Positions 3,500 to 12,504 of a stretch of DNA of 64,000 nt are shown here, piece by piece. Numbering within the stretch: position 1 is the first letter of the stretch; each line of letters starts with the position of its first letter. Source of the DNA: Guillardia theta CCMP2712 (Eukaryota > Protista > Cryptophyta). The translations under genes and the position numbers were made by a program. The notes below the pieces were generated by a model that was given only the letters and a program-made list of their open reading frames with translations, was not told the origin of the DNA and ran no database searches. Where the stretch lies: the NCBI RefSeq assembly GCF_000315625.1, contig NW_005434578.1:87501-151500 (forward strand), given 5' to 3'.

Positions 3500-4734
3500 T
3501 CCATTGAGAGGAGATCTGCGCGCTAGACGGTGCAGGCAGTGGCTTCAAGCGCTGGATTGCTGACACCGATGTAGAAAGGGTGGAAACTGAGCAAGGAGAC
3601 GGTCATTGAATTCCTGAGATTGCCCAAGTTGACGATCCAGCTTGCGTTCAAGGTCTTCCTGACGCTGCTGGGCATCCTTGCGGGCATCTGCATTCTGTTG
3701 CAGGAGTAAAGCAAAAAGTCAACGAAGAGATGCTTCTTTGTCGCTGGTGGTAGGAGAGTTTCGACCCGAAGACATCGCAGAGATGGGCTCTGCGACAGGG
3801 GTGCGCGAAGCAAATGCACCAGAGGCTGAATCACGTGAAGCATGTGGAGCTGGAGACTCCTTAGCGAAGACAGACGGTGCTGGTACAGGCGCAAAACAAC
3901 ATGGGCGAGCACAAGAAGCTGAATGGGAATCCTGCTGTGGTCGATCTTGCATGCCATGATTGTATCATCATCTCTCGTTACGGAAAAAGGACGGGGAAAT
4001 TGGAATTGTTCAGCTCCAACATTTCATTGGATTGAAGTTGGAACAGAAATTTGTTCCGTAGATCTCGAAATCCTTCTTTCACTGGTCAGAGCCTTACACA
4101 ATCTGTATACAAGAGGTTGAGACTATCGAAAGGTAGCGCGACATTGCTAGTTTTAAATCATTCTGATGTGCAATGACAGGCCCGGGCGAATGATTGAAAC
4201 ACAGAGGGTTACAACACATTACAACGATGGTTTCCTGTAGGGAAGTGGTCAAACTACGAGCGAATATTCATCCCAGTCCATATTTGGGGTACCTGAACAA
4301 GGACAGCACGGGAAAGATTGAAGGCATGCCGCAGTGCCGCGAGTTTGATGCGGTTGTAGAACCATGTATCAAGGTGATCAAGGAGAGACACGACAGAAAA
4401 CAAAGTCGGCGACCTATCCTGATCGGTGAAAAAGATTTCTTGCGATATGAATGGCAGCAAAAGGGATTACAAGGAGGAAAGATCTGGCAGCAGGAATACG
4501 TTGCTTCCAACAAGATCAGTAGAGAAAATCCACATCCCTGATGATATTCACCAAGCTCCCTGGATACAGACCCCCCAACAAACTGATTCCGTGTCATGTG
4601 GCATATTTCTGTGCGCTATAGCTGACTGCTTGTCTGGTAACATGGGAGTGAATTCATTTGGCCAAGGAGACATCGACGAGATCCACAAGGCTATAGAAAC
4701 TTTATTGAGAATCTTGTATTTATGTAAGAAGTGA
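3500..4734 (+). CDS. Ulp1/peptidase C48-like cysteine protease (SUMO/NEDD8 protease-like), spliced
   Basis: Ordered motifs across exons: RWIADTDVER (like WLND), DCIII...FHWIE (His), YLNKDS (Asp), TPQQTDSVSCGIFLCAIADCL (oxyanion Gln and catalytic Cys, like PQQxNxxDCG). 5' end uncertain. Confidence 0.6.
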
Positions 4735-5059
4735 ACGCATGCGCAGTGTAGGCGACTGATACATTCAATATGAGCTCACATGGCAAAGGAGTGTTACAAT
4801 GTGGATGGATGGACAATGACATTACAATGTCTATCGTGGCATTGCCTGTGACAGATACATCGAAGTTGCCATCACTACGTTTGCCATCGATTGCTGGAAG
4901 TTGACCCCATAACCTGCAATAGGAAAAATACTGCAGAAGATGATCTCATAAGGAGTAGTAGCACTGATCGGTAAAAGATGATGTCACAATGTAGACAACT
5001 GCAGAATGTCCCCCGGATTGTACACCCTTACACAAGTTTGCAACATTGCTGTCCATGGC

Positions 5060-6800
5060 GCCCCGATATGGGGGGATAGAGGGAGGGACAGGCATTCCCA
5101 CAAAGTGATCAAGTACCCCTACAGGATGTGGTATTTAAGGCTTCCAGAAGGGGGTACTGTAGTCTGTCACCCGCCGCTAGAACGGGGTACGACGACCACC
5201 CCCATATACAACTCAATTTGTTACATACTAGAAGCACGAGGTGGGGGGTGGGCGTGGGGGTGGAATGAGAAGTGGTGGAGTCAATGCAGGGGGTAGTGCT
5301 AGGGAAGCTGTGGGGTCGAATACAAGAATACTTTTCTTTTAAAAATGTTGTTAAACATTATTGAGTCGTACCAGAAAGTACCCACCCTCTGTAGACAAAA
5401 TATTGTTGTTTTGACCCGTTGTGATAGAGAGGAATATGCTTTAAAATTTATTGATTAGAAAACCTCTAACTTTATTAAAACTACCAGAAAAATAGTTATA
5501 ACTGTTCTTGTAAGCTACAATAATTTTTTAAGTCCAGGACAGCAAGTATAAAAAGTAGTAGCCGTATAACCTTTTTTTAATTGTTACTCCTACAGCCCGA
5601 CCCACTCTACACCTACTAAAGCTACCCCCACCCCCATCACTGTTCTAGACAGAAGCTCACCCCTTTAATCAACCCCCCCTGTCTCCTCCTCCACCACCCT
5701 ACCTGCCACTACCCCTACCTCCTCAATTTCTCTATGCCTAATCTTGAGACTGCCACGTACCTCTATTCGCCACCCCTGACCCCTTACACTATCAAACTCA
5801 CATTCCTTAATGCCACCGGTGTTTTCCCCTTGAAGTACCCTTGTTATCAAGAGCTGAAAACCCTCAGGTATCTTCTCCACCCCTGGCTCTCAATCCCAGT
5901 TCAGTGACTCATTGATTGTGAAACAACCCCTACCCACAAATACCACCCTTCCTGGATCTGTACCCCTCGATTCATATATGAATACCCCCTTGTTTCAGCC
6001 TATCACTCACCCTGTGAGCTAGGGTTTGAACTGATGCTTCTATAACCTGCCAACTAATTTATAAAGAACTCTGATAGTTCGGAGTGAATCAAACCTATAA
6101 AGATTTTATATGACCGTTTCTATTATTTCTGGCATGCTTCACCTGCCTGCTGCTGATGTGAATCAAAATGACCAAATCAGTTGGCGATGGACGCATTTCT
6201 TGTATATAAAACACTTTTATTGAGTTTAATTATATTGTTAATTGACAAACATCGATGCTTGTTTCACACATCGATACAACTCCTACTGTAAAAGTACTTA
6301 TAAATTCTGAACTGCTACAGTTCTCGAGCGATTTCGGTACAAAATATATTTTGAGATCTGTACAGAGATTAGATATGTTGTTGTTATAATACCAATCTAT
6401 TTTTGAAAATATATTTAAAACTTCATCGGATCCGAAAAGACAAGATTTCATCTTGCAATGTCTATGGACCCCCATGTTCTGCCTTCAAAGCGCATTCTTG
6501 GATGCTACCCTACCTGCCCCTCACCAAAATGTATACCCACCCTCATAATCAACTAGTTGTCATCCCCCTTGGGATGGTACCCCCAAATTAAACAATGAAC
6601 CCCTCAATGAAGGATTAGACCGGACTTTTACCCTCAATACTCCACAGGAATTTGGGGTCATCATTACCCAATGTCATTTTATACCGGTACGTTCAGTCCA
6701 GTACCCACCATCTCATAATCCTGTTTATAACTCACCGGTCATAGCAACGATTTTGACCCACCCTTCTACGCAACCACTCTACCCCACCCCCACCCATTAG
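5060..6800. promoter_or_regulatory. strand-skewed intergenic region: G-rich arm, AT-rich core, C-rich arms
   Basis: GGGGT/GGGTA runs at 5060-5310, AT-rich 5320-5580, ACCCC/TACCC runs at 5590-6000 and 6460-6800, upstream of the 678-aa ORF. Confidence 0.5.
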
Positions 6801-7251
6801 GGACCTACCTCTGAAGCATCCTCTCCTCCATGCAGGCGTGATCTCGTCGGCATCCAGCAGCTCCAACCCCCCCTCGTGCTCGCGCCCGGACACCTTCCGC
6901 TCCTCCCAGGCTGCTGGTCGGTCTTATCTTCACCAGCCCCTCTAGATCAATCGCCTTCTGATCTCTGAGGCCGTCAGGGTGCTTGCCGCGGAACTGCAGA
7001 GGATATTTCTTACACCTGCTCTGCAAAAGGGGATCCGTTGAAGTTCATTCCTTGTTTCCAATCGGCGACTTTGAGAAGGGATTTCAAGTCTTTGGGTGCT
7101 TGTATTGACACTGGCTGTTGCATGGTTTGCATTTGAGACAAATCTTCCTCCAGCATTCCCCCAAAGAATCAGAAATCGTCGAAGGCAGACAACTTGAACC
7201 TGGAATATATCACGTGAAGACATTGGATGAACTGATCTGGAAGTTGTTACA

Positions 7252-9288
7252 ATGATGCAAGGATTAGAAACGGCTGGATACGACGATCATATGAACCTTC
7301 CTTGGGACTCCCTTCGGGAGCAAGATTGGGCCTCATTAGGGTGTGATCCTGGTGAGACGGATTTTGATGTTCTCACAAACCACGACATTTTTGGAAACCA
7401 ATCATCTGCACCAATCGAAATTGATGGCGTTGACGGTGATATGAATTGCTCTGCGCTTCTGGGTTTTCAATGTAGTCCTGTTGCGGTTGATTCGTCTGTG
7501 GACTTCCTCTGGGAAAGTCTTGGAAATTCCAAGCAGGGTGCGCAGAATGCTTCTGCTCAGACTTCCAGTTCGAACACAAATGATCACCAAGCAAGCAACC
7601 AGGAGGGGTGGTTGTCCTTTGATCAGGACAACAATGGCGATCTCAAGGTGCATGAGGATCACAAGCACATTCTTCCTGCTTTGCCGTCTTCGCCCCTTAC
7701 CTATGCACACTTCTCACATGGAATCGACGGTATGAGGGATGAATCTACAGCCAAAGATGGATTCTGTACAGGACATTTCTGCTGTGTAGCAATTGGTGAT
7801 GGACGAGTGTCTCCACATACCAGTGATCAGGCTCGTTTCCTCTTGGAAAATTTGAAACGATCTGCCGGTAGGGATGAGCATGCGATTGTTCGTCTCAAGA
7901 ACGAAGCGTCGATGGACTTGAAGATCTTGGTGTTCCCTTATGCGTCACCCGAATCCCTTGCATTGCGAGAATACATAGCATCCAACGTCAGCCAAATACC
8001 GGCTCCTTTCGTGCTCCTCTGCGGTGACTTGTCAACAGGAATGAAATCTTCATTCACTGATCATGTCTCCACCAATGTGAAGTCATACATCATCAAAGGG
8101 CTGGCAGAGTGCATGAGTGACAAGCGATGCAATGTCACCGCTTCAAAGTTGAAGGGTAACGAAGGTCCGAGGGCAGCTGTGAATCTCGTGGAGCCATTCG
8201 CTTCTACGTTTTTCAAAGACGTGATCGATGTTGACAGTCTACCTAATCATCAACCCACGGATGCTGAGGCTTCGACATCACACTTTGCCCCTAAGGTCTC
8301 CCCTCGTGCTGGGTTGCCTTACAACATGGGCTCTTCTACTCCGAGGAATTCGTCACCGGACGAGTCGGTTCCTTCGACCCCTCGAGCTGACGATGAGGTG
8401 CACGTCGAGGGTAAAGCAACAGCACACTTTCCGGTCAATCTGTTTGTGACAGCGATTGCGGATGGTTCGATTGAATCGGACACTCCTCAAAAAATCCGGG
8501 AGCGGCTTGCGCAAATTGTACGAAAAGTCCCAAAAGAGCAGAACACAAATGTGGAAGTTTGTGACGGCGGAACAATTGATTTGAAGATGCGAGTTTTTGT
8601 TGTCAACAGTGAAGATGCAAAGGCTGTAGGGGAATACATCAACAGTCATCTGAAACAGAACCCAGCTCCATTCGTTGTCCTTGCAAGACACCTTCCGATG
8701 GCGGTACTCTATGACCCAACTTTGCTTGATCTTTCCGATGCAAGCGTAGCTGATCGTTTGAGGAAGCAAGCAAAGACTCGAGCAGTGAAGGTTCTAAGGG
8801 AGGCAATCGCCAACAAATCCTTGGGGATAACGATGTCAATGATGCGAGGCCATGAGGGTGCTTTGATTCCTGCCGACAGATTGTATGATGCTCTGGGAAC
8901 TCTGACGAAACCTGTGCAAGATGGTGACAACCCAGGCAAGTACATTATCTTCGAAGCCAGGAACAAGGCGGGAAGCGTACCGTGCTCTCCGAGAAAGAGA
9001 CTGGCGAGTGAGGCTCTGGACAAACAACCCCTGTCAGGTGGGAGCATGCATCTTGGGATGCCTGGCAGTACGGCAGGCACGATGGGGCCTGAGAGTCGAA
9101 TAGCAAACGACATGGTGTACAAACCTGTGAATCACCCGAAAATCATGTCCAATGGGAATAGGAAAGCCTCGATGGCCTCTGCTTCAGCAAGCTTCCTGCA
9201 CCGCGACATGATTGTGAAAACTTTCAACAAGCGGGCAAGAAAGGAGGAATTCCCTTTTGACGGTGTATACGATCACGAATTTGTATGA
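7252..9288 (+). CDS. 678-aa intronless hypothetical protein with two tandem copies of an unrecognised ~150-aa domain
   Basis: Long uninterrupted ORF. The internal repeat AI(G/A)DG...DLKxxVF...EYIxS...PAPFV(L/V)L...G(N/H)EG occurs twice. Acidic N-terminus and basic PRKR and KRARK motifs. Confidence 0.85.
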   Translation: MMQGLETAGYDDHMNLPWDSLREQDWASLGCDPGETDFDVLTNHDIFGNQSSAPIEIDGVDGDMNCSALLGFQCSPVAVDSSVDFLWESLGNSKQGAQNASAQTSSSNTNDHQASNQEGWLSFDQDNNGDLKVHEDHKHILPALPSSPLTYAHFSHGIDGMRDESTAKDGFCTGHFCCVAIGDGRVSPHTSDQARFLLENLKRSAGRDEHAIVRLKNEASMDLKILVFPYASPESLALREYIASNVSQIPAPFVLLCGDLSTGMKSSFTDHVSTNVKSYIIKGLAECMSDKRCNVTASKLKGNEGPRAAVNLVEPFASTFFKDVIDVDSLPNHQPTDAEASTSHFAPKVSPRAGLPYNMGSSTPRNSSPDESVPSTPRADDEVHVEGKATAHFPVNLFVTAIADGSIESDTPQKIRERLAQIVRKVPKEQNTNVEVCDGGTIDLKMRVFVVNSEDAKAVGEYINSHLKQNPAPFVVLARHLPMAVLYDPTLLDLSDASVADRLRKQAKTRAVKVLREAIANKSLGITMSMMRGHEGALIPADRLYDALGTLTKPVQDGDNPGKYIIFEARNKAGSVPCSPRKRLASEALDKQPLSGGSMHLGMPGSTAGTMGPESRIANDMVYKPVNHPKIMSNGNRKASMASASASFLHRDMIVKTFNKRARKEEFPFDGVYDHEFV

Positions 9289-9557
9289 ACTATGTCAGGG
9301 AAGGAGAAGTAGCTACTTGGGGTAAGGGTCTGCTGATCGCATATCGGACGAGTTGTTCAAATCGACCAATTTGTAAAATCAAGTTTTTTCGAGTGATGTC
9401 CTAAAGTTATCTCTGTTGGCTCTGGTTCACTTATTGCAAGGTTCTGTGATTAAACGCCTGCGAAAGTATCTGCTGAGCAGAGGAATTTGCGCGCAAATCA
9501 ATAAATGAGATGAAAAAGATGACTGCTCGCAAACTCTATCCAAATTCAACTCTCGTC

Positions 9558-11199
9558 TCATGCAGCATTCGCGCGAATATCGTTGATGGAGGTGACAGAA
9601 AACCCGGAGGTCCGTGCGAGGTAGACGGCGTCGAGGTCTTCCATCCTCCCTTCTCCGCTTGTGGGCGCAAGCTCTCCCATGCACGCCACAGTCTCCAGCC
9701 CTGCCGATCTTAAGAGGAGGAGGGAGGCCTGGAACTTGTCCACCTCTTCCACCTACACATGCGTCACTCGCTCTCCTCCGCTGCCTGCTCCTCACCTTCA
9801 AGGTATCCACATCGACTGGAACTGGTAGGATGTGTCCATCCAGCTCGAGAGTCTCAGCTGTCCCGTTGAGCAGGCCGTGAAGGGTTTGCAACCGAGAGTC
9901 AGCCGCCACCCCTTCTCAGCACGTCACCAATGGCAGCACGAGCAAAGAATCAGTACCGGAAGACTGCAGCAGCATGGTCGAGACTGCGTCTGTCAGCTTC
10001 AACTTCACCTGCCTCTCCTTGTCCAGCGGAGCCCAGAGCACCCCTGAGGTGTACCTCGACATGCTGGCAAGAGCGCTAGCGGACACAGTCTGAGCGCTTG
10101 CGAGGAGAAAGGCCCTCTGTTGGTCGATCATCACGATGAGCTTGCCGGCAGCCAAACTTGCTGCAGCCTCCTTGACAGAGGAGCTGCCGAAGGAGAGGCC
10201 GCTAGACGCTTCGCCGTCCTCCGTCAGGTCAAGCTTGAGAGAGTGGGACATCCTGGCCGCCTTTGTCCTGAGATATTTCACGTTGTAGGTGTTGGGCTCC
10301 ACCAGCGAAGGTTTCGTCCTGTCGATCTTCACCCCCACGTCTGTCAGCTGCTGGATCTTGTAGGGGTTGTTGGTCACCAACTGCACTGACAGGATCCCCA
10401 TGTCCTCGAGGATCGCAGGAACACAATCGTAGGACCTTTCATCGTCCTCGAACCCCAGATGCCTGTTAGCGTCCACCGTGTCCAGCCCGTTGTCTTGCAG
10501 CTGGTATGCAGCGATCTTGTTCGCCAGGCCGATGCCCCTCCCCTCCTGAGGCATGTAGATGATGGCTCCAGAGTTCTGGTTGATGTAGTTGAGTGCCATG
10601 TCCAACTGCTCCTTGCAGTCACACCTCTTCGAGCCCAGTACCTCCGACGTGAAGCACTGATCGTGTACCCGCACAACCACTCCCTCCTTCCCCCTCAAGT
10701 CCCCGCTCACCATCACCACCGGCTCCATCTCCGTCCACTCCAGCACCCGCTCGCCGTTCCTTGTAACTATCTTAGCTCCCCTGTACCTGTAGGAGCGCAG
10801 ACGGAACATCCCGCGGTCAGTGGGCATGTGGCACTCAGCGATGAACTCAGTCTTGCCCTCGGGGTAGTACTGGTCCCCGAAGCTCTTCCCCTGGCTCGCG
10901 CGCATCGGCTCGATGGCCATGCGCAGCTTCAGGTGAGCCGCGTTGATCCGCGGGCTGGAGCTGCCGGACATTCCCACGGCAGTTGCGACATGGTCGTGGA
11001 AGGAGGAGCGATGGGGCGCAGGGGCTTGCGGACGAGCTTCCATGTCTACTGCTGGGAACGTGCAGGCGAAGCAAGCCGTGTCCTTGAGCCAGAGGGAGGA
11101 GATGAGGAGGAGCACCATGTAGAGCGACATGTTGAGCCAGCAGTGGGTAGAGAAGGGAGTGCGAGCTTTCTTGCGGCAGGCGCCTGTCTGTTTCCCCAT
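9558..11199 (-). CDS. ribA: GTP cyclohydrolase II with a C-terminal degenerate DHBP synthase (RibB-like) domain; hydrophobic N-terminal segment
   Basis: VRVHDQCFTSEVLGSKRCDCKEQL (three Zn-binding Cys), QEGRGIGLANKIAAYQLQDNGLDTVDAN and LVTNNPYK. Introns 9912-9956 and 9753-9795 extend the frame through RibB-like GVAADSRLQTL...GHILP...LLRSAGL...SINDI to the stop at 9558. Confidence 0.92.
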
Positions 11200-11909
11200 A
11201 ACCTTCCTCGCTTCTCCTCCTAGAGCTCAGGCAAGAAATCTTTGTGCCTGCATGTCATCGGGGGATCCTCGTGTCCTGCCCCCTGTCCGCTACCTGAACA
11301 TCCCACAGTGAGCAACAAGAGCATCCGGTCGCCTCCTCTGACCGCTCTATCCAGGTGTCAATCTTGAGTGGGGAGCGAAGAGGCTGAGGAATCAGAGCGC
11401 AACCAGAGGCCCAAGACTGAACCCTGAAGGAACGGGTTAGCGAAGGAGACGGCAATCTGCGGACGGAGAGTCGATGGAACTTGGAGACATGGGGGAACCA
11501 AAAGGTGACTTAAGGGAGGTGGAGGGCACTGGGGCAGACAATGAAAGCAAGAGAAAAGAGAGAACAGTGATGAGAATGAGAAGGCAGACGAGGAGGAAGT
11601 TGTCGTAATCATCGTAATGTATGAGAAAAGAGATGATGATAACCATTACAACAGGGGGGAACTCATGTGATTTGAGCGAGCAGGATGGAAGATGTACGCA
11701 AGCAGAGAGAAAGACAGATGACCTCAGAAACAAAATATGATGAGGGAAAAAGAGCAAGAATCATGACCGGCAGGTCAAGCGACGAGGAGTTGGAGAGTGT
11801 TCACAAGCAAGAAATCAGAAAATCGTCAAGACAGAACTACGTTTGGTGAAGTAGCAAGCAAGTCCTGAGAGGGAGGATAAAAGGAGGAGCAGAAGCCGGA
11901 GGAGAAGGA

Positions 11910-12245
11910 GATGGTGAGCGAGAGGGAGATGGAGAGCAAGAGCAAGAGGGAGAGCAAGAGCAAGAGCAAGAGCAAGAGGGAGAGCAAGAGCCAAGAGCGA
12001 GAGCGAGAGCGAGAGCGAGAGCGAGAGCAAGAGGGAGAGCAAGAGCAAGAGGGAGAGGGAGAGCAAGAGCAAGAGGGAGAGCAAGAGCAAGAGGGAGAGG
12101 GAGAGCGAGAGCAAGAGGGAGAGCAAGAGCGAGAGCGAGAGCGAGAGCGAGAGCGAGAGCAAGAGCGAGAGCAAGAGCGAGAGCAAGAGCGAGAGCAAGA
12201 GCGAGAGCAAGAGCGAGAGGGAGAGCAAGAGCGAGAGGGAGAGCG
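11910..12245. repeat. compound hexamer microsatellite (GAGCAA/GAGCGA/GAGGGA)n
   Basis: Directly visible tandem hexamer variants. Confidence 0.95.
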
Positions 12246-12504
12246 CTTGCATGCAATGACTCGCAAACATCTAAAGGAGGCCGCACAGCCTGTGATTTAG
12301 CAAGCATGTATAACCATCTATAAACCATACCCGTTATACATGCTGCTAGAGCCTCGGGCTTGCCCGGCTCCCGGCTCCCGGTGCCTTGTAGTCACTCAGT
12401 GCCGGGGGATGAGATCGAGTCCGCCTCGCTATCAATTATTAGGAAAAGATGAGGTCATCTGAATTGTGATACGGAGAAGCAGTCAAGTGGAAAGGCCCGG
12501 GGAC

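Follow-up and report, generated by a model that had tools for sequence, protein, structure and literature searches.

The 64,000-nucleotide stretch of the Guillardia theta CCMP2712 genome analysed here (contig NW_005434578.1, positions 87,501 to 151,500; hereafter the window) contains on its minus strand, at 11199..9558, a gene in which a GTP cyclohydrolase II (GCHII) is followed by a homolog of RibB, the synthase of DHBP (3,4-dihydroxy-2-butanone 4-phosphate), that is predicted to be catalytically dead. We consider it probable that the gene encodes, from the nucleus, a plastid GCHII whose tail descends from a bifunctional enzyme with swapped domain order, and that the dead RibB half has been kept for a structural role; the catalytic death, the plastid location and the structural role are the parts of this reading that we infer. 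The product would be imported into the plastid and, in the GTP branch of riboflavin synthesis, catalyze the first committed step. The tail would descend from a swapped GCHII-RibB enzyme that is still active in the ochrophytes and, having lost metal- and substrate-binding residues, would make no DHBP, which would be supplied by a separate canonical RibB encoded on another contig. The dead domain may hold or stabilize the GCHII dimer through its DHBP synthase (DHBPS) fold, or dock the enzyme to partners in the pathway.

The GCHII half, which is encoded by exon 1, matched PF00925 with 174.4 bits against a cut-off of 23.3, over positions 4-162 of the 165 in the profile. When it was aligned to the E. 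coli RibA structure 2bz0 (E 3e-35), we recognized the zinc site Cys-x10-Cys-x-Cys (HDQC..KRCDC, equivalent to E. coli Cys54, Cys65 and Cys67), the EGRGIG motif and the active-site residues Tyr105 (AAY) and Arg128 (DER). The zinc and active-site columns were invariant in 61 relatives, and this half of the protein is apparently catalytically intact. The leader in front of it has a Kyte-Doolittle maximum of 2.05, in a 15-residue stretch from residue 24, the second methionine, and in related proteins, too, AAF, AYL or a similar motif comes after a hydrophobic segment. Complex red plastids use an ASAFAP-type targeting motif, and cryptophytes follow a +1 phenylalanine rule. The leader of the Guillardia protein, hydrophobic and with an aromatic residue close to where cleavage is likely, would fit import into a complex plastid.

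That the tail is a true homolog of DHBPS is secure. Exon 1 matches PF00926 with 27.7 bits against a cut-off of 26.4 (residues 344-406, profile positions 2-68), and a six-frame profile scan of the whole assembly (87.1 Mb, 669 contigs) gave a match of 45.4 bits to positions 2-133 that runs from exon 1 through intron 1 into exon 2. Within exon 3, another frame (9561-9752) matches positions 139-189, the last quarter of the profile. The part of the tail encoded by exon 1 was by itself sufficient to retrieve the M. tuberculosis DHBPS 3mk5 from the PDB with phmmer (E 4e-5), in an alignment with a 4-residue gap at the RENE of the acidic loop. The exons were handled singly, and two spliced or contiguous homologs, the Hanusia phi transcriptome protein P0002 (601 residues) and the full-length relative P0008, served as stand-ins for the joined protein. 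P0008 matches eleven DHBPS entries in the PDB. The fold predicted for its tail (195 residues from its contig; P0008 belongs to clade I of the relatives) has a predicted local distance difference test score (pLDDT) of 91.9, and its best structural match is the M. tuberculosis DHBPS 3mio (E 8e-18, template modelling score 0.78); unrelated folds match only at E >0.01.

The DHBPS of V. cholerae, whose residue numbering is used here, has an acidic loop at 34-41 and a lid loop with Thr108 and Asp114, and the mutants Glu39Ala, Glu41Ala and His154Ala are each without DHBPS activity (PMC5228156, citing mutant assays). In the Guillardia tail, Glu39, Asn40 and Glu41 are lost through a deletion of 3-4 residues in the acidic loop, Asp43 is replaced by Phe and the loop Cys by Trp, Asp114 (exon 2) has become Ser and Glu156 has become Gln, and both His154 and Thr155 are absent at the junction of exons 2 and 3. 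The Guillardia/Hanusia type also lacks about 15 residues, among them those of loop 2 and of a strand lining the site. Arg115 and His137 (in the GHI(L/F)P motif), both in exon 2, and Glu175, in exon 3, are kept. None of the aligned degenerate relatives has the whole GHTE motif, parts of which persist as a His in one clade-II protein and as Thr-Glu in two clade-I proteins, and clade II keeps the R-x-N-E-G of the acidic loop. From these residues it is a strong prediction that the tail has no DHBPS activity. What live and dead RibB domains have in common is a core consisting of the FG..SV start, several Gly and Ala residues and Arg115, with no active-site residues, which points to a role of the fold itself.

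A tail that still acts as a DHBPS, or on a related sugar phosphate, by means of a rebuilt active site would be in line with the retention of Arg115, His137 and Glu175 and with the R-x-N-E-G of clade II. We find this scarcely credible, since both glutamates of the acidic loop and the metal-binding His154 and Thr155 are gone along with the segment of about 15 residues, and since the genome keeps a separate canonical RibB. This stand-alone gene is located on the plus strand of contig C13, at 838572-839966 and beyond (8572-9966 of the extracted locus L017). It consists of about ten very short exons of 17-35 codons each, covers 210 of the 216 positions of a profile made from canonical domains, and has VVDDEDRENEGD and GHTEAS intact. 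We found no GCHII relic, which would be a sign of gene fission, within 8.5 kb upstream of it, and no public protein for it was among the protein-search hits retrieved. Compared singly, its exons show 62-69% identity to RibB domains whatever their architecture, so that no affinity could be called.

The original prediction, made from the letters of the window, had described an intact N-terminal GCHII and behind it a DHBPS-like tail in which the acidic loop is replaced and GHTE is absent. The PF00925 score and the zinc and EGRGIG residues agree with the first of these claims; the comparisons with Pfam and with structures that it recommended for the tail (PF00926 above its cut-off, the match to 3mk5, the fold of P0008) agree with the second, and the loop deletion and the missing His154 and Thr155 with the third. 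Its description of the RibB domain behind the live GCHII as dead is well supported as a prediction, in that residues are lost whose mutation abolishes DHBPS activity, and the search that it proposed for a separate active ribB led to the C13 gene, in which all motifs are intact.

The gene model, assembled from the list of open reading frames (ORFs), Pfam and homolog alignments, has three exons and two introns (Table 1). The longest open frame starts with the ATG at 11199, encodes 427 residues and is closed by a TGA at 9916. Translation probably begins at the second ATG (11130, MSLYMV...), because the conservation with Hanusia begins at the second methionine. The conserved exon 3 is reached only if both introns are removed, since the first contains an in-frame stop and the second shifts the frame; removal of intron 2 restores the frame in which exon 3 is conserved with Hanusia. 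The exons themselves are free of frameshifts and stops. An alternative acceptor for intron 1, 3 nt upstream, is possible in the window and is destroyed in a closely related environmental contig (L015), which favors the 45-nt intron. The protein search brought up no public model of the gene. For comparison we mapped the introns of a paralog on contig C30, the NCBI protein GUITHDRAFT_86681, all 350 residues of which are exact exon matches; this marks the genome as that of G. theta CCMP2712 or one identical to it at this gene. The introns of the paralog measure 44, 60, 50, 116, 45, 114, 48, 50 and 48 nt, so that seven of the nine fall within 44-60 nt; all but one have an AG end and eight of nine a GT start at the mapped boundary, the boundary of the first mapped intron being ambiguous by a few bases. 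Introns of 45 and 43 nt are therefore ordinary for this genome.

Table 1. Features of the GCHII gene and its RibB-like tail, in window coordinates.
Feature	Position	Strand	Description and basis
Exon 1	9957..11199	-	ends in phase 1, before the GT donor at 9956; ORF list, Pfam
N-terminal leader, putative bipartite plastid-targeting	10864..11130	-	hydrophobic segment (MSLYMVLLLISSLW...), then Phe residues and a Ser/Ala/Pro/Arg-rich stretch
GTP cyclohydrolase II domain	10318..10839	-	PF00925, residues 121-294
Pseudo-RibB domain, first part	9982..10170	-	PF00926; acidic loop deleted, DQQ-R replaces DDEDRENEGD
Intron 1	9912..9956	-	45 nt, GT..AG; in-frame TGA at 9916-9918
Exon 2	9796..9911	-	middle of the pseudo-RibB domain; tblastn with Hanusia P0002, hmmalign
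Intron 2	9753..9795	-	43 nt, GTGAGG...TGTAG; sequence
Exon 3 and stop	9558..9752	-	TGA at 9558-9560; C-terminal third of the pseudo-RibB domain; PF00926 positions 139-189

The Hanusia protein is 86% identical over exon 1, and in tblastn searches about 70% identical to exon 2 and about 79% identical to exon 3, the latter in the shifted frame and with a run of 41 identical residues. The leader 5' of the second methionine and both intron stretches could not be aligned to it. Its ORF stays open and in frame through both of the stretches equivalent to the Guillardia introns, and within the C-terminal domain its structural model has pLDDT <50 at these stretches only (residues 454-465 and 508-535), the rest being >90. 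As modelled, they would fit either retained introns that stay open or disordered inserts specific to the lineage. With residues 454-465 kept, the RibB-like domain has its canonical length, so intron 1 of Guillardia could be former coding sequence that has turned into an intron.

It could be argued from these data that the protein simply ends at the TGA at 9916 and that exons 2 and 3 are untranslated. The open frame does stop there, an automatic gene caller read a near-identical contig in this way, and the reading of the Hanusia transcriptome ORF through the stretch equivalent to intron 1 means that no intron is proven at that place. We nevertheless regard a truncated product as very improbable, because exons 2 and 3 are conserved at the protein level with Hanusia in the right frames, because the GT..AG ends and the sizes of the introns match those of the genome, and because conservation is lowest in the intron stretches, which the Hanusia model shows as disordered. 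The two short introns that had been claimed from the sequence are thus borne out by their ends and typical sizes and by the conservation of exons 2 and 3 in Hanusia and in L015.

The environmental contig L015 is about 96% identical to the window at the DNA level and has kept both introns and the in-frame stop. Its final stop is at the same codon position, with TAA instead of TGA, and one 3-nt indel separates the two sequences in exon 2. Intron 1 differs at 6 of its 45 positions, more than the exons do. Comparison with L015 gave 12 synonymous and no nonsynonymous differences in the GCHII domain (ratio of nonsynonymous to synonymous differences per site, pN/pS, 0). The RibB-like parts, for which the statistics were summed over three pieces, had 11 nonsynonymous and 18 synonymous differences (pN/pS 0.20, p 2.5e-5 against neutrality). 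For exons 2 and 3 alone, the numbers were 6 and 7 (pN/pS 0.29, p 0.027), which also argues against an untranslated 3' part. The tail is under purifying selection.

This result is relevant to the possibility that the tail is a functionless relic, either decaying or tolerated as a passenger. The very long branches of the degenerate domains described below, the disappearance of all catalytic motifs and a pN/pS above that of the GCHII half are what such a relic might look like. Yet the pN/pS of the tail is significantly below the neutral expectation, exon 3 shares its run of identical residues with Hanusia while the introns and the 5' leader are unalignable, the exons are without frameshifts or stops, and two old paralog lineages, as well as dozens of environmental sequences, have retained the domain with a confidently predicted fold. 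We therefore give the hypothesis of a neutral relic little credence.

A word-based protein search returned thousands of relatives, of which 246 proteins were fetched and sorted by domain architecture. GCHII is placed first and followed by a fully canonical RibB in 96 of them, and by a degenerate RibB in another 45, while 57 have the usual RibB-first order. The named members of the first category are ochrophytes, for example Ectocarpus, Tribonema, Thalassiosira and Nannochloropsis; those with the usual order are actinobacteria, red algae, Pavlovales and one pelagophyte. A Pfam scan of ten fetched proteins confirmed the domain order and the scores: in the five scanned from Ectocarpus, Tribonema, Thalassiosira and others, a DHBP_synthase match of 250-270 bits is located after GCHII, and in Hanusia and the environmental degenerate relatives the match has 27-52 bits. 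The cryptophyte GCHII genes sampled were those of Guillardia, Hanusia and Baffinella and two Cryptomonas sequences; the tail was seen in Guillardia and Hanusia only, the Baffinella and Cryptomonas entries ending early or in low-complexity sequence. The motif W-x-F-G-K/R-x-SV before RibB was rejected as a marker of the swapped fusion, as it is also present in the Porphyridium RIBA, which has the usual order. The clade-I relative P0122 is encoded by an uninterrupted ORF of 547 codons on a 22-kb metagenome contig from ENA (L019), where closely packed called genes are all contiguous ORFs, as opposed to the intron-rich genes of Guillardia.

A quick IQ-TREE run on 124 rows gave a GCHII tree in which every eukaryote sequence is well removed from those of bacteria. 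The GCHIIs with degenerate tails fall in one group of 43 rows (SH-like approximate likelihood-ratio test support 91) that is nested among the swapped-order ochrophyte proteins. Within it, one subclade (support 98) contains the gene in the window, Hanusia, Baffinella and P0003-P0009, and another (support 86) contains the Guillardia C30 gene, P0010-P0021, P0029 and P0040. Of the proteins with the usual order, only bacterial ones could be placed in this tree, where a very long branch leads to them. In the RibB tree (84 rows), 9 of 11 degenerate domains form one clade (support 95) inside a eukaryote group that also holds the swapped ochrophyte proteins and haptophyte RibBs, with red algae and bacteria separate. 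The branches of the degenerate domains have lengths of 2.4-4.9 changes per site, where the median is 0.23, and the domains of P0008 and P0009 were pulled to the root. The usual-order proteins of bacteria and red algae fall outside the degenerate clade, in a fetched set that was without plant RIBA proteins.

A swapped GCHII-RibB fusion in the ochrophytes has been published and dated to the ochrophyte ancestor (Dorrell et al., 2017, eLife, PMC5462543). Neither a cryptophyte version nor a dead half is mentioned by these authors. Their sentence on the fusion (PMC5462543) swaps the N- and C-terminal labels, for the ochrophytes as well as for bacteria and plants; in our Pfam coordinates, GCHII comes first in the ochrophyte proteins. 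With regard to the 'independent, order-swapped fusion' of the original prediction, the order of GCHII followed by a RibB-like domain was confirmed by Pfam, but the independence is not supported in view of the 96 swapped canonical proteins, the nesting in the trees and the published fusion (PMC5462543).

The most economical reading is a single swapped fusion with later decay of its RibB half: the order is the same, the cryptophyte GCHII halves are nested in the swapped family, and the RibB-like halves, on very long branches, come out inside the eukaryote group. If the cryptophytes had joined GCHII and RibB in swapped order apart from the ochrophytes, this would agree with the date given for the fusion by Dorrell et al. 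(PMC5462543), and the great divergence of the degenerate domains makes their position in the RibB tree uncertain. We think that such a second fusion is unlikely, since the cryptophyte GCHII is nested among swapped ochrophyte proteins, the degenerate RibB clade is located inside the eukaryote group that holds these same proteins, and a single fusion, inherited or else passed between red-plastid lineages by gene transfer, requires fewer events.

The second GCHII gene of Guillardia is located on the minus strand of contig C30, at about 138548-141947 (4548-7700 of the extracted locus L016). Its public model, GUITHDRAFT_86681, ends 29 residues past the GCHII domain. Just downstream and on the same strand, a profile of the degenerate tails matches four collinear pieces, the best two with 14.5 and 9.1 bits; one of them, LDRESKEGVLVAAAAAV..., aligns to the acidic-loop region, and another, C-terminal, ends in a stop. 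They are supported by a tblastn hit with P0029 (E 0.005). After KYLRAK the sequence continues as RMSHAIEFDQ in another frame, as it does in the relatives, and the public model has probably missed a splice donor and seems to read into an intron at this point. It is probable, judging from these matches, that both GCHII genes in Guillardia carry a dead RibB tail.

What the dead domain does for the enzyme is a matter of prediction. DHBPS is a homodimer with loops that cross between the subunits (PMC5228156), and for this reason a dimerizing or stabilizing role is the simplest proposal. A less favored idea, to which we assign a small chance, is that the domain is a regulatory module that sets the flux through GCHII, either as a sensor of a ligand such as ribulose-5-phosphate or a pathway intermediate, or as a docking surface, for which the separate RibB or lumazine synthase could be candidates. 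A pair of EF-hands (PF13499, PF00036) is inserted in the degenerate RibB of the environmental clade-II proteins P0017 and P0141, between the N- and C-terminal halves, and other clade-II members have an insert of about 100 residues at the same position. The insert in P0017 hints at regulation in that lineage and would add a calcium input.

Several points weigh against our preferred reading of a plastid GCHII with a dead RibB tail kept for its structure. The catalytic death is predicted from residues, the dimerization or partner binding of the tail is something we infer, and the splicing of the two introns is deduced from conservation and from the form of the splice sites. The evidence for the fold comes from homologs, and the alignments given to the predictor included canonical DHBPS, which would favor a DHBPS fold. 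Furthermore, the selection test of the tail is based on 29 substitutions only, and the placement in the RibB tree is suggestive and could be a long-branch artefact.

Among known systems, the swapped GCHII/DHBPS of the ochrophytes (PMC5462543) has the same order and a leader of the complex-plastid type, and its GCHII half is 40-60% identical. Its RibB half is canonical, with acidic loop and GHTE, whereas in Guillardia the RibB half scores 28-54 bits and lacks these, and DHBPS is encoded separately. The bifunctionality that characterizes the ochrophyte-type fusion is accordingly not found in the Guillardia protein, in which the RibB half is without the catalytic residues. A parallel is provided by plant RIBA3, in which an active GCHII is combined with an inactive DHBPS, as shown by assay and complementation (Hiltunen et al., 2012, PMC3509567), and which has been conserved since early vascular plants with the usual domain order (PMC3509567). 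As in Guillardia, a live GCHII has long retained a DHBPS without its essential residues in the presence of another source of DHBPS, and RIBA3 is located in the plastid. Unlike the Guillardia protein, RIBA3 has DHBPS first, is of other origin and has undergone point substitutions rather than loop deletions; its loss of activity is known from assay, whereas that in Guillardia is predicted from the sequence.

Two further systems were among the structural matches. The proteobacterial RibBX (PDB 6mnz, A. baumannii) is likewise a two-domain riboflavin enzyme in which one half is non-catalytic, but it is the mirror case, a bacterial protein of the usual order with an active DHBPS and a degenerate GCHII-like domain. 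The canonical RibBA/RibA2 (M. tuberculosis Rv1415, PDB 4i14), which was among the best matches for both halves, has the same two folds; in the enzymes of this type from bacteria, red algae and plants, DHBPS precedes GCHII and both are active.

The combination of swapped order and a dead RibB tail, in two old paralogous lineages, appears not to have been described. These lineages hold both Guillardia genes, Hanusia and many environmental sequences. There also seems to be no earlier account of cryptophytes that combine the swapped order and a dead second half with two paralogs and a separate live RibB. A swapped fusion that was thought to date from the ochrophyte ancestor exists in cryptophytes with a dead second enzyme, which bears on the movement of genes between red-plastid lineages. 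After plant RIBA3, it also provides a second and independent example of a GCHII that has long kept a dead DHBPS partner, and this argues that the DHBPS fold serves GCHII beyond catalysis. Annotation based on domains will call such proteins bifunctional, which is probably wrong.

The surroundings of the gene offered some minor observations. Its whole 3' flank is 96% identical in L015, as conserved as the coding sequence, and the 270-bp spacer that separates its 3' end from that of a convergent 678-residue ORF (7252-9288) contains a perfect 14-bp palindrome (ATTTGCGCGCAAAT) at 9485-9498. Upstream of the gene, a low-complexity tract at 11815-12328 has long overlapping open frames on both strands, with SL, AL, CS and ER/EQ repeats.

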